Below are positions 33,709-36,889 of a stretch of 64,000 nucleotides of DNA, piece by piece. Made by a program: the position numbers and the translations under genes. The DNA is from Selaginella moellendorffii (taxonomy: Eukaryota > Plantae > Lycopodiophyta), in assembly GCF_000143415.4 (NCBI RefSeq), contig NW_003314329.1, forward strand, positions 19,421 to 83,420, written 5' to 3'. Below the pieces are notes generated by a model. That model ran no database searches and was not told the DNA's origin. It saw only the letters and a list, made by a program, of their open reading frames with translations. Numbering within the stretch: the stretch's first letter is position 1; each line of letters opens with the position of its first letter.

Positions 33709-35393
33709 TAAAATATTTCACACTCCCCCTACTCTTATAGTGTGGGGCAGCTTGATCCAAAGCTGCAGCGTACCTCCACAATCCCGTGTTCTTTTTGGGC
33801 GCCAAAAAGCACGCCCGCGGGACATGTGGTACCTCCCCAACAATTCACGAAGACCGCGTTTTGGGGCCCAAAACGCGCGCTGCAAAATGTGGGGTACCTC
33901 CCCGACTTTTCGTGAAAAATCGCGTGTTTTGGGCCCCAAAAAAAGCCCGCGGAACACGTGGTACCCTTGCAACTTCTCGCGAAAAATCGCGCGTTTTGGG
34001 CCCCAAAACGCGCCCCGCGAAATGTGGGGTACCTCCCCGACTTTTCGTGAAAAATCACGCGTTTCGGGCCCCAAAAAAAGCCCGCGGAACACGTGGTACC
34101 TTTCCAACTTTTCGCGAAAAATCGCGCGTTTTGGGCCCCAGACATTCCGGGCCACTTTTTTTTCCCCCTCCCCCCCTTTTCCGTGCCACGTGGCAGGCGG
34201 GCAGGGCCTTCCCCCCCTCCCTCACGCACGCGCAGGCTGAGGCTCAGCCTGCGCCTTCTCCGTGCGCTTCGGGCCCGGGAGAGTCCTCCCCCCTTCCTCC
34301 CTCCGTCGCACGGCAGGTGGGGGCCCCTCCCCTTTCCCGCCGCGTGACGCTGGCCCTTGCCAAGCAGCCGTGCCGCCCCCGAGGCTCGCCTCCCTTGGAA
34401 GCCCGGAGGACCACACTGCTGCCTCCCTCCCCCTCGCCCGACAGGCGTGCGGATGTGGTCCCAAGGCCATGCCCATGGACCGCACAGCACGACTCTGCCA
34501 AACGCTGGAGTGGGTGCCAGGGAAGCCACGCCGAGGCTCTCCGCAGCCGAGAACCCTTGCACAACCCCACCCCCCATCAATACTGGGGAGGCCCCCCCCA
34601 CGCCACCGGCCAAAGGCCACGAGCACTCACACATGCGACACTGCCCAGGCATTCCACGTCGGGAGTTCCGCGTCTGGATCGCCGATCGGGTAACACCTGG
34701 ACGGATGCTGCACGTGCTTGCCACCAGAGCAGCTGAGCACCGTTTCCTTCGGCCGGTGGGCACGGGAAGCCCACAAGGTGAGGCACACAAGGGGAGCCAT
34801 CGAAGCGCCACGACGTGACCCTGGCAAGTGAGCCAACTCTCGTTTGTATGGGAAGCAGAGCTGGGCAGCCGCAGTTCAACCCCAGCTGCCCGAGAGCCTC
34901 CACTCCCCACCCATCATCCTACAGGTAAGAAAGTCCCTCCTCTTTCTGGGACAACAGCTTTTGGCTATTTGTCCCAGTCCGAGTTCAAGCTTGAGCGTGA
35001 GCAGGAGCCAAGTCCAAACGCGAGCCCGAGCAAAAGCCCGAGTACGTGCTCAAGCCTGACTTCAAGCCCAAGTCCAAACAGGCAGGAGCCCGCGCATGCC
35101 CTGGAAGTCCAGCAGGGGGTGTGGAGAGGTCTGACCTCGGCTGCCCACACTCCCATCCCCCACTTGTGAGACACAAAATCCCTAGGCCCCAAAGTGGAGC
35201 CGGAAGGGCGCCACATGGTAGTGGCCGAAGCGAGAGCCAAACGAGCGTAACATGTTTGGACCCAAAGCTCCGACTTGAAAAGTCAAGAGCGGGAGTGGAA
35301 CTCCCAACGAAGTGCTCGAGGAACGAGCACGAAGCGAGCAAAAGGTGAGGCTCCAAAAAGGGACCCTAAAGGACCAACACATGACACGTGGGA

Positions 35394-35870
35394 GAGTCCG
35401 AGATGGACCCGAGATGGAGTCCGAGGTGGAGTCCGAAGTGGAGTCCGAGGTGGACCCGAGATGGACCCGAGGTGGAGTCCAAAGTGGAGTCCGAGGTGGA
35501 CCCGAGATGGACCCGAGTTGGAGTCCGAAGTGGAGTCCGAGATGGAGTCCGAGATGGAGTCCGAGGTGGACCCGAGATGGACCCGAAATAGAGTCCGAGA
35601 TGGAGTCCGAGATGGACCCGAGCTGGAGTCCGAGATGGAGTCCGAGATGGACCCAAGATGGACCCGAGATGGAGTCCGAGATGGAGTCCAAGATGGAGTC
35701 CGAAGTCGAGACCGAGACCGGGACCGAGACCGAGACCGAGACCGAGATCAGGACCGAGACCGAGACCGAGGCCGAGGCCGAGACCGAGCCCGAGCCCGAG
35801 TCCGAGTCCGAATCCGAGTCCGAGTCCGAGTCCGAGTCCGAGTCCGAGTCCGAGTCCGAGTCCGAGTCCG
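35394..35870. repeat. 11-12-bp (GAGTCCGAGATG / GACCCGAGATG) and 6-bp (CCGAGA, CCGAGT) tandem repeats inside the LTR
   Basis: Directly visible tandem arrays. Confidence 0.95.
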
Positions 35871-35880
35871 GAGCCTGAGA

Positions 35881-35949
35881 GGGTGAAAGCCCAAAGCGTT
35901 CATCTCCCAGACCCTGGGGGGTTTGGTGAGCTCCAAAAGTATAGTAGGG
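35881..35949 (+). promoter_or_regulatory. Copy of the rDNA Pol I core promoter inside the LTR (+1 equivalent about 35946)
   Basis: 56/69 ungapped identity to the reverse complement of 5438-5506, with 19/19 and 18/18 terminal blocks. Confidence 0.78.
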
Positions 35950-36877
35950 GGAGGACTGCAGTGGAGCCAGTTTGGCCAGGAAAGGCCAGTTTGGCCCAGG
36001 AAGGCCGGACCCAGTGTTGGGTGATGAGCTGCCCACTAGGAAGTCCAAGACTAGAGTGAACACGGACCGACAAGCGGGGTAGCTTGGTGAAGTGTTCAAG
36101 AGCCGGCTCTAGTTCCCCCGGGAGATCGACTGGCCGATGCTCCCAGTCCAAGTGTGGGTGGCACTATCTACTTGGATACCAGGCGTGGCTCAACGGAACC
36201 TCGCTCTAAGCCCATGGCTAGAGCACCTAAAGGCGAAAGGCGGGGAGAGTACCCAGGTGGCTCGCGTAAGGCCACGGTGTTCCGAAATGTTGTCCCAAAA
36301 GCCTAGACTGTGGAAAGGAAGAGGAGCAGTCCTCTGGGGTAGTGACCAAGGACACAGTCGTGTGGTGAGGAAGTCCTAGAGGACCATGGGACTTAGTGGC
36401 CGGGCCTGTGGGCCTCGATCCAGTGGCAGTGTTGGTAAACACGGCCAGGGGCAGAAAGGGACTTGGTAGGAACTGACAAAGGGACTTTGGGGAAGGCGAT
36501 TCCCCAAGTCTGTGGGCATCCTAAGGATGCTAAGGAGCGGGTCTAGGATGACCACTCGTGAACAGATGGCCCAGTCTTGGAGAGACGGGATGGTGATGCA
36601 AGTGGTATTGGACCACTAGTGCAGCAAAGGTGAATGGGCATGGCCTTAGCGTAACGGGCCGAGATGTCAGTGGTACCTTCGGGTGTCGGTCTTCGGACCG
36701 GACACGTGGAGCACTTGGACCAGGTGCAAGTGTTGAGTGGCATGGATGCCATTCTTGGGGCTAGCAAGTCCCAAGTCCTGAATTGGACTAATGGAGGTTG
36801 TGAATGAGACTCCTCCAAATGGTCGAAGGTGTGGTTAAGTGACTAAAGTAGAATGGAAAAATTAGTCGCTTACAATT

Positions 36878-36889
36878 TGGTATCGGAGC
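36878..36889 (+). promoter_or_regulatory. Primer-binding site (initiator tRNA-Met-like)
   Basis: TGGTATCGGAGC, 11/12 to the canonical TGGTATCAGAGC, 3 nt after ...TTACA. Confidence 0.85.

Follow-up and report, generated by a model that had tools for sequence, protein, structure and literature searches.

Does a long terminal repeat (LTR) lying in the rDNA of Selaginella moellendorffii carry a promoter taken from the host 35S rRNA gene as its own, and which polymerase would use it? The question is raised by a 69-nt segment of an LTR in the window, the whole stretch of 64,000 nt analysed here. The parts of the element that bears this LTR, and a Cassandra element of the same window with which it is compared, are as follows.

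35165..36874, plus strand: 5' LTR of 1710 bp, starting with TGTGAG and ending with CTTACA (delimited by the limit of rDNA homology and by breaks in DNA contigs)
36878..36889, plus strand: primer binding site TGGTATCGGAGC, 3 nt 3' of the LTR (from sequence)
36890..39040, plus strand: interior of the element up to the assembly gap, with a longest ORF of 112 aa and no Pfam match
39041..39140, no strand: 100-N assembly gap, concealing the remaining part of the element together with about 3.3 kb of rDNA
13463..14089, minus strand: Cassandra element, each LTR of which gives a 5S match (E about 4e-5)

The rDNA homology ends at 35164, immediately before the LTR, and contigs of the DNA run X1 break into differing flanks exactly at 35164/35165 and 36874/36875. 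These observations uphold the limits of the 1.7-kb LTR proposed in a preliminary description of the locus (35165-36874). The termini are TG...CA with a short terminal inverted repeat. In many X1 contigs, a purine-rich, PPT-like tract ending in GGGTGGTGGAG is found directly before 35165, as expected before a 3' LTR. The primer site TGGTATCGGAGC matches the tRNA-Met-type sequence TGGTATCAGAGC at 11 of 12 positions; the latter, which we take to be the canonical tRNA-iMet-type primer site, is borne exactly by the Cassandra element. The preliminary description had called the element non-coding, and as far as the gap this holds: no ORF of the interior is longer than 112 aa, and the ten longest have no credible Pfam match, all being under the curated cut-offs. 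An exact look-up of ten ORFs of the element in a protein collection found none present.

The element is inserted antisense to the rDNA in one rDNA unit, within the IGS1 that separates the 26S gene from the 5S gene. It meets the gap at 39041, and 26S sequence restarts at 39141, right after the gap. Only one LTR is assembled, and no second one is found within the 64,000-nt window, where the gap interrupts the element. Truncation of the 26S gene at 39117-40577 by the element was considered and rejected, because the assembly gap explains the break.

The LTR is not confined to this insertion. On a 6-kb stretch around the element, 143,261 contigs with 90-100% likeness are placed, and the summed contig depth in X1 is higher over the LTR than over the IGS. 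Flank agreement at the loose ends of both LTR termini is low (0.66 and 0.37). Since many contigs break into differing flanks exactly at 35165 and 36874, the LTR belongs to an abundant, dispersed retrotransposon family, in support of its first description as part of an LTR retrotransposon. The differing flanks in X1 further suggest that most copies are situated outside the rDNA.

The segment in question and the sequence upstream of it are arranged as follows.

35394..35870, plus strand: tandem arrays of the presumed U3, with about 27 copies of a 12-mer followed by about 29 copies of the 6-mers GAGACC and GAGTCC, found by Tandem Repeats Finder
35881..35949, plus strand: 69-nt copy of the 35S rRNA gene core promoter (sequence match to the rDNA promoter), consisting of an upstream box (35881-35899), TCTCCCAG (35903-35910), a diverged 21-nt spacer and an initiator box (35932-35949)
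35946, plus strand: predicted +1, the last A of TATAGTA directly before GGG (plant initiator consensus; PMC7928365; PMC5407837)

The 69-nt module was compared with the rRNA gene promoter (reverse complement of 5438-5506). Both span 69 nt, and the upstream and initiator boxes are identical at 19/19 and 18/18 positions, respectively, while the 21-nt spacer agrees at only 11 positions, giving a total identity of 56/69. Apart from the total, these values are as originally reported. The difference between the boxes (37/37) and the remainder of the module (19/32) is significant (Fisher p = 9e-6), and the two boxes have no match in shuffled sequence. The module lies in the middle of the LTR and is oriented toward the primer site, again in agreement with the preliminary description, and it contains the sole TATA tetranucleotide of the 1710-bp LTR.

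The extent of the module should be noted with regard to promoter function. In Arabidopsis, a region from −55/−33 to +6 is enough for the rRNA promoter, with the consensus TATATA(A/G)GGG (PMC7928365), and the initiation site of Avena is TATAGTAGGG (PMC5407837). The identity between the LTR module and the gene promoter extends from about −65 to +4, matching the minimal plant Pol I promoter region (about −55 to +6), and TATAGTAGGG itself is found at 35940-35949, fitting the plant Pol I initiator TATATA(A/G)GGG / TATAGTAGGG. Position 35946 would thus be +1 if the module works as it does in rDNA. The reverse derivation, of the rDNA promoter from the LTR, is unlikely because TATAGTAGGG is a general plant initiator.

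The rDNA of the window provides further copies for comparison.

31560..31628, minus strand: rRNA gene promoter of the unit adjoining the element (sequence match), with a predicted +1 at 31563
5438-5506, 18576-18644, 45054-45122 and 57093-57161: identical rRNA gene promoters (sequence match)
22329..23316, minus strand: IGS1 sub-repeats of 220-240 bp, adjoining the 26S gene on its downstream side; a diverged copy of the spacer promoter is present in each
near 9175-9724, 48806-48873 and 60830-61379: more IGS1 sub-repeat arrays

In all five rDNA units (5438, 18576, 31560, 45054 and 57093), the gene-promoter module and the 60 nt flanking it on either side are identical. Twelve spacer-promoter copies in the IGS1 sub-repeats match the gene promoter at 18/19 and 13/18 positions in the upstream and initiator boxes. 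The LTR module is therefore nearer to the gene promoter than the twelve copies that the rDNA itself carries in its spacers.

The immediate flanks of the module had been described as unrelated to rDNA, a statement which has to be amended for the 12-nt tandem unit. This unit (35394-35703) matches the 17-mer CCGAGGTGGAGTCCGAG of the 5'ETS ten times, with one mismatch each. CCGAGGTGGAGTCCGAG is situated about 30 nt into the 5'ETS, and in the rDNA and the LTR alike it is oriented in the same way with respect to the module. RNA reads from IGS1 sub-repeats also cross-map to the array, at 35533-35553. The 12-mer array is thus related to rDNA spacer motifs.

Such rDNA-like sequence in the U3 beyond the module can be explained without any function. 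The module may be rDNA spacer sequence acquired through recombination or template switching in a family living in rDNA arrays, or the locus may be a single chimera or misassembly; the position of the element inside an rDNA array and the assembly gap at its right end fit this explanation, as does the view, expressed in a 2024 review, that transposons mostly gain nothing from the rDNA pieces they carry (PMC10946416). However, the junction at 35165 is an exact family terminus and not a recombination point, and the depth of the bin containing the module equals that of the adjacent LTR bins. In addition, a contig of X16, a run guessed to be RNA, still spans the module although 16 of its 500 places deviate from the window. 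Had the module been captured or converted recently, the spacer between the two perfect boxes would not be half diverged. Although the silence of the element in the RNA data described below also suits a functionless piece, we regard this explanation as improbable.

Searches for relatives by other routes gave no match that can be attributed to the family. A protein search with a 305-aa reading frame of the LTR, scored over the part covering the module, found nothing, and two metagenome scans with the module gave 0 matches. An exhaustive profile search with an 80-aa translation across the module found only two repetitive, unrelated proteins, which are taken as chance matches inflated by repeats.

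Which polymerase would read a retained promoter? The preliminary description proposed that Pol I starts at 35946 and produces an uncapped genomic RNA that is packaged in trans, making the element a Pol I counterpart of Cassandra. In favor of this, both boxes and their exact spacing are retained in a complete core promoter, and a box at −65 to −47 would be needless for a simple TATA-dependent Pol II promoter. The tandem array directly upstream of the module resembles the arrangement in rDNA spacers. A non-coding element does not need a cap for translation, and 3' of the module, in the presumed R-U5, no AATAAA-type or other canonical poly(A) signal is identified. On the other hand, the LTR is without a copy of the rDNA terminator.

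Pol II is the normal polymerase of LTR elements, and plant rRNA gene promoters are used by it in vivo, though inefficiently (PMC7928365, citing Doelling and Pikaard 1996). In this case, TATAGTA, with the only TATA of the LTR, would act as a TATA box or an initiator, and the upstream box would bind a factor not exclusive to Pol I. There is, however, no evident reason why such a promoter should present an upstream box identical at 19/19 positions and spaced exactly as in the rDNA promoter, and the missing canonical poly(A) signal in the presumed R-U5 is also unfavorable. We consider use by Pol II plausible, though with a probability somewhat under one half.

The RNA data consist of two public stranded RNA-seq runs, about 12% of each of which was read. 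Pol I products are covered by these runs, with depths of 8-13 over the 5'ETS and up to 217 over the 3'ETS/IGS1. Around the gene promoter of the adjoining unit (31560-31628), the depth rises from 0 at 31700-33499, on the upstream side, to 8-13 at 31300-31499, on the downstream side. An X16 contig extends there to 31547, leaving 16 nt to the predicted +1 at 31563, where the exact start is blurred by cross-mapping sub-repeat reads. Over the LTR and 35700-37299, in contrast, the depth in the two runs is 0-1.7 despite the higher summed DNA depth, and no 5' ends or start are found at 35946, the position where the LTR transcript had been expected to begin; from this position onward the depth is about 0. 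The RNA depth at 31500-31699 and 35500-35699 was rejected as a sign of promoter or LTR transcription, the loose ends showing that these reads are cross-mapping IGS1 sub-repeats. The X16 contig over the module continues for 125 letters upstream of it, which also speaks against a Pol I start at 35946.

The family is thus essentially silent in the tissues sampled, a result compatible with activity elsewhere. The earlier suggestion that it may be transcribed by Pol I finds no backing in these runs, in which spacer transcripts of Pol I are nevertheless detected. Because of the LTR depth of 0-1.7 and the lack of a start at 35946, though the 5'ETS and 3'ETS are covered, Pol I use is treated here as hypothetical. 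We judge Pol I initiation at 35946 to be unlikely, and equally unlikely that the family, transcribed from its LTRs by Pol I, represents the first retrotransposons with a Pol I promoter of their own. The absence of transcripts in these runs also speaks against Pol II. Use of the TATA-like initiator by Pol II is at least as likely as use of the module by Pol I.

Conserved boxes without visible transcripts might also be explained by a role other than transcription of the element: Pol I initiation factors recruited by the module might serve, for example, nucleolar retention, rDNA-directed integration or escape from silencing. The location of this copy in an rDNA spacer would suit such a role. However, we know of no precedent for it, the orientation and the mid-LTR position facing the primer site suit a promoter, and the many differing X1 flanks suggest that most copies are outside rDNA. 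This possibility is quite remote in our estimation.

The explanation that we prefer is as follows. The segment 35165-39040, with its LTR, primer site and non-coding interior, would form the 5' part of an abundant non-autonomous LTR retrotransposon. Its LTR appears to hold an rDNA-derived block, in which an amplified spacer motif is followed by a complete 35S core promoter. Both boxes and their spacing would have been kept while the sequence between the boxes drifted, suggesting that the module is retained as the core promoter of the LTR itself, at the U3/R boundary, where it would bind the host factors recognising the rDNA promoter. Several observations weigh against this explanation: no RNA 5' ends occur at 35946, with a depth of 0-1.7 over 35700-37299; only one LTR is assembled; conservation of the module throughout the family is drawn from depth and one contig; no terminator or poly(A) signal is identified 3' of the module; and the perfect boxes may partly reflect slippage in G-runs of the rDNA spacer and not selection on the LTR side. 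As a whole, with either polymerase, a non-autonomous LTR element that keeps an rDNA core promoter as the promoter of its LTR seems to us slightly better than an even prospect.

The preliminary description gave no published example of such an element, and the literature search agrees: an LTR containing the core promoter of the 35S rDNA (Pol I) is described neither in the 2024 review of the relations between rDNA and transposons (PMC10946416) nor in the other literature searched. The promoter captures by LTR elements in the literature searched concern Pol III (5S, tRNA) only. If Pol I does transcribe the family, the series would be complete, with Pol II in ordinary LTR elements and Pol III in Cassandra, Helenus and Ajax. 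If the module is functional, a mobile element would be able to recruit the rDNA initiation machinery outside rDNA, providing a natural test of the sufficiency and polymerase specificity of a plant Pol I promoter, and how a nucleolar uncapped RNA reaches packaging would become a question. Even under Pol II, the conservation of the boxes and their spacing would single out, with no need for an experiment, which parts of a lycophyte rDNA promoter are functional.

Among known systems, Cassandra, a TRIM, is similar in being a non-autonomous LTR element whose LTR contains a copy of a host rRNA gene promoter (Kalendar et al. 2008; PMC10853983, PMC7215508); this copy tracks the 5S gene (PMC10853983). 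The present element and the Cassandra element of the window agree in the GCTTACA that closes the LTR, in the ATT spacer and the primer site, and over part of the leader. Only about 60 nt of the leader, in addition to the LTR end and the primer site, align above shuffles, and the leader alone is borderline; collinearity of the leader with the whole Cassandra interior was rejected. The promoter of Cassandra is an internal 5S promoter of Pol III type in an element smaller than 1 kb, whereas the present one is an upstream 35S core promoter of Pol I type. The LTR alone (1710 bp) and the interior (>2150 bp) each exceed the size of Cassandra and TRIMp3 elements (<about 1 kb). Between 35165 and 39040, no similarity to 5S or tRNA is found at any E up to 1, while the Cassandra element at 13463-14089 does match.

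Helenus and Ajax ("TRIMp3"; Kojima 2024, PMC10886601) likewise have a promoter taken from a small-RNA gene and need autonomous partners. Their promoters are all of Pol III type, 5S in Ajax, as in Cassandra, and tRNA in Helenus; Pol I, 18S and 28S are absent from that report (PMC10886601). R2/R1 and Pokey are also transposons linked to rDNA, R2 being made by Pol I within the pre-rRNA and Pokey having IGS-derived 200-bp repeats. However, R2 is a non-LTR element that lacks its own promoter, and Pokey belongs to the DNA transposons, its IGS repeats not being reported in that review as the core promoter (PMC10946416). LARD elements have long LTRs and a long non-coding interior and are mobilised in trans, and the non-coding interior of the present element fits up to the gap, which hides its total size; the review gives no rDNA promoter module for LTR elements (PMC10946416). 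The spacer promoters of plant IGS have the same two-box module with the same spacing, as in the IGS1 sub-repeats of the window. They stay within the rDNA array and their initiator box has drifted, whereas the LTR copy is mobile and keeps perfect boxes amid LTR-specific sequence.

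The LTR at 35165-36874 (plus strand) is the genuine LTR of an abundant non-coding retrotransposon family and contains the rDNA core promoter in a well-preserved copy. This copy, a 69-nt module at 35881-35949 (+), comprises an upstream box (35881-35899, 19 nt) and an initiator box (35932-35949, 18 nt) with a 21-nt spacer between them. The module and its counterpart in the gene promoter, the reverse complement of 5438-5506, both re-read exactly as the preliminary description wrote them. The perfect end boxes and the equal spacing around a diverged spacer that it claimed also hold, as both boxes are identical in the two modules, each module is 69 nt long, and identity is 56/69 overall and 11/21 in the 21-nt spacer. 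Identity is complete in the boxes (37/37), whereas it is 19/32 in the remainder (Fisher p = 9e-6). The initiator box of both modules ends in TATAGTAGGG, the initiation site in Avena (PMC5407837). Even when 60 nt of flank are included on either side, the gene-promoter module does not differ among the five rDNA units of the window, and neither box occurs in shuffled sequence. The match to the rDNA promoter is genuine and far exceeds chance expectation.

Twelve diverged duplicates of the module are found in the rDNA itself, in 220-240-bp sub-repeats directly downstream of the 26S gene. Judged by their position and shape, they are putative spacer promoters.

Sub-repeats carrying putative spacer promoters
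9175-9724, minus strand, three sub-repeats
22329-23316, minus strand, five sub-repeats
48806-48873, minus strand, one sub-repeat
60830-61379, minus strand, three sub-repeats

Units range from 12.5 to 13.6 kb in length, partly because they differ in sub-repeat number (3, 5, 1, 3). Compared with the gene promoter, the duplicates match at 18/19 positions in the upstream box and at just 13/18 in the initiator box, and they are 1 or 2 nt shorter overall. Since both boxes are perfect in the LTR, the LTR copy is nearer to the gene promoter than the rDNA's own duplicates are. The boxes and spacing are common to all three kinds of copy, and about half of the between-box positions differ. The between-box spacer of the gene promoter is nearly pure G (runs of 11 and 6, at 5455-5476 and the equivalent positions of each unit), and slippage in this tract may account for much of the divergence of the gene promoter from the other copies.

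A tandem repeat with a 12-nt unit at 35394-35703, overlooked in the preliminary description, should also be noted. It gives ten matches, with one mismatch each, to the 17-mer CCGAGGTGGAGTCCGAG, which is present in every rDNA unit some 30 nt past the predicted start, in the same orientation to the module as in the LTR. The reverse complement of the 17-mer lies directly upstream of each spacer promoter. As this array is rDNA-related, the rDNA-related block in the LTR may be about 555 bp (35394-35949) instead of 69 bp.

The surrounding DNA is made up of 35S rDNA units arranged head to tail on the minus strand, and every spacer includes a 5S gene (Rfam). ITS1 stretches of about 55 nt (27545-27599 and 41064-41118) are 93% identical to part of a 5S gene (33602-33656). 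In the odd unit, rDNA homology ends at 35164 (22335 in a normal unit) and restarts at 39141 (25622, within the 26S gene). A scaffold gap of 100 N lies within the array at 39041-39140, with retrotransposon interior on its left and mid-26S sequence on its right, so that the order and count of units across it are not certain. The break and the gap together mark 35165-39040 as foreign DNA, its right end concealed by the gap. A 26S gene truncated by the element was considered and rejected, the apparent truncation being an effect of the assembly gap.

The LTR assignment of the preliminary description is borne out by the TG...CA-type ends (TGTGAG at 35165 and CTTACA at 36874), the primer site and the family boundaries. 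The primer site, TGGTATCGGAGC, lies 3 nt past the LTR end. Contigs of the public DNA run X1 were mapped onto 31300-37299, where 143,261 contigs fit at 90-100% likeness. Their summed depth is 0.9-8 million per bin on the LTR (a repeat-skipped bin excepted); most of the rDNA spacer has 0.4-0.6 million. Contigs diverge exactly before 35165 (n = 50, flank agreement 0.66) and exactly after 36874 (n = 54, flank agreement 0.37). These breaks into differing flanks, together with the depth, show that both termini are family boundaries and that the family is abundant and dispersed. The most frequent sequence before 35165 has the purine-rich GGGTGGTGGAG at its end, resembling the polypurine tract found ahead of a 3′ LTR. 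Only one LTR is assembled; the side of the element with the second LTR and the target-site duplication is hidden by the gap. As far as the gap, the longest ORF of the interior is 112 aa, and its Pfam matches all fall under the curated cut-offs and are not credible; the element has no RNA-family match. The non-coding interior makes the element, as far as assembled, a non-autonomous, LARD-like one.

In Arabidopsis, the minimal rRNA promoter spans -55/-33 to +6, with the consensus TATATA(A/G)GGG (PMC7928365). The LTR holds a full copy of the corresponding region, placed mid-LTR and directed toward the primer site. This copy keeps both boxes and their distance intact, with a drifted spacer in between. 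Within the 1710-bp LTR, the module contains the sole TATA tetranucleotide, and no AATAAA-type signal is present downstream of it. The module may have been retained as the core promoter of the LTR, where it would recruit factors that recognize the rDNA promoter; we lean slightly toward its being the promoter of the LTR.

Stranded raw reads of the RNA-seq runs X22 and X23, about 12% of each read, were mapped on 31300-37299.

RNA depth in X22 and X23
31300-31499, 5′ETS directly downstream of the promoter: 13 and 8.5
31700-33499, upstream of the gene promoter: 0
33700-35164, IGS1 (the spacer between the 26S and 5S genes), from the 5S gene to the insertion point: 9-217
35700-37299, LTR: 0-1.7 on the sense strand, ≤0.4 antisense

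The rDNA-sense pattern matches expectation. An assembled contig of X16, a run guessed to be RNA, extends to 31547, 16 nt short of the predicted +1 at 31563, which supports the gene-promoter assignment without fixing the start to the base. All of the spacer between the 26S end and the 5S gene is covered by rDNA-sense RNA, which is absent from there on to the gene promoter. Pol I products thus appear to run on about 2.8 kb past the 26S gene, through the spacer-promoter sub-repeats, and to stop near the 5S gene. Signal at 31500-31699 and 35500-35699 was rejected as local transcription, because the loose read ends reveal cross-mapped sub-repeat reads; cross-mapping to 35533-35553 arises from the reverse complement of CCGAGGTGGAGTCCGAG adjoining each spacer promoter.

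The Pol I transcription of the LTR proposed in the preliminary description gains no support from X22 and X23, in which no read starts pile up at 35946, the predicted +1, and the few LTR-sense reads sit near 36700-37299, not behind the module. That Pol I makes the genomic RNA from the module is unlikely, though the upstream box and exact spacing, which have no obvious reason to be kept in a TATA-driven Pol II promoter, speak for it, and a non-coding element needs no cap. If the module is the LTR promoter, its use by Pol II is slightly more probable than its use by Pol I, as Pol II has been shown to be able to use plant rRNA promoters (PMC7928365). In the sampled RNA the family is nearly silent, despite a summed DNA depth above that of the rDNA spacer. 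Silencing of transposons is common, so this silence does not tell the two polymerases apart.

Another X16 contig, 649 nt long and with a depth of 5, aligns to 35882-36381 at 16 differences; it has 125 further letters upstream. At least one diverged copy therefore retains the module, and the RNA represented, if RNA, did not begin there. That the module is a functionless passenger, or the copy a chimera, is more improbable still than Pol I transcription.

A 2024 review lists, as rDNA-derived transposon sequences, only 5S promoters, a 28S fragment and the IGS repeats of Pokey (PMC10946416). The literature searched holds no description of an LTR element with a Pol I promoter, and an rDNA core promoter copy within an LTR appears to be undescribed there. 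The closest parallels are Cassandra, Ajax and Helenus, all LTR elements whose Pol III promoters come from 5S or tRNA genes (PMC10886601, PMC10853983). The element shares with them only the principle of promoter capture; it lacks their defining features, since it shows no similarity to 5S or tRNA and is not of miniature size. The window contains a Cassandra of its own.

13463-14089, minus strand, intact Cassandra-type miniature LTR element at the 5′ end of one 26S gene

Each of the two LTRs of this Cassandra is about 195 bp long and matches 5S rRNA (E ~4e-5); its primer site reads TGGTATCAGAGC, and a 5-bp target-site duplication (CTGAG) flanks it at 13458-13462 and 14090-14094. Its tRNA-Met-type primer site differs from that of the element by one mismatch, and the two elements have the end of the LTR, the primer site and some 60 nt of leader in common (local score 40; shuffles 16.9 ± 2.6, maximum 29), which hints at a common autonomous helper.
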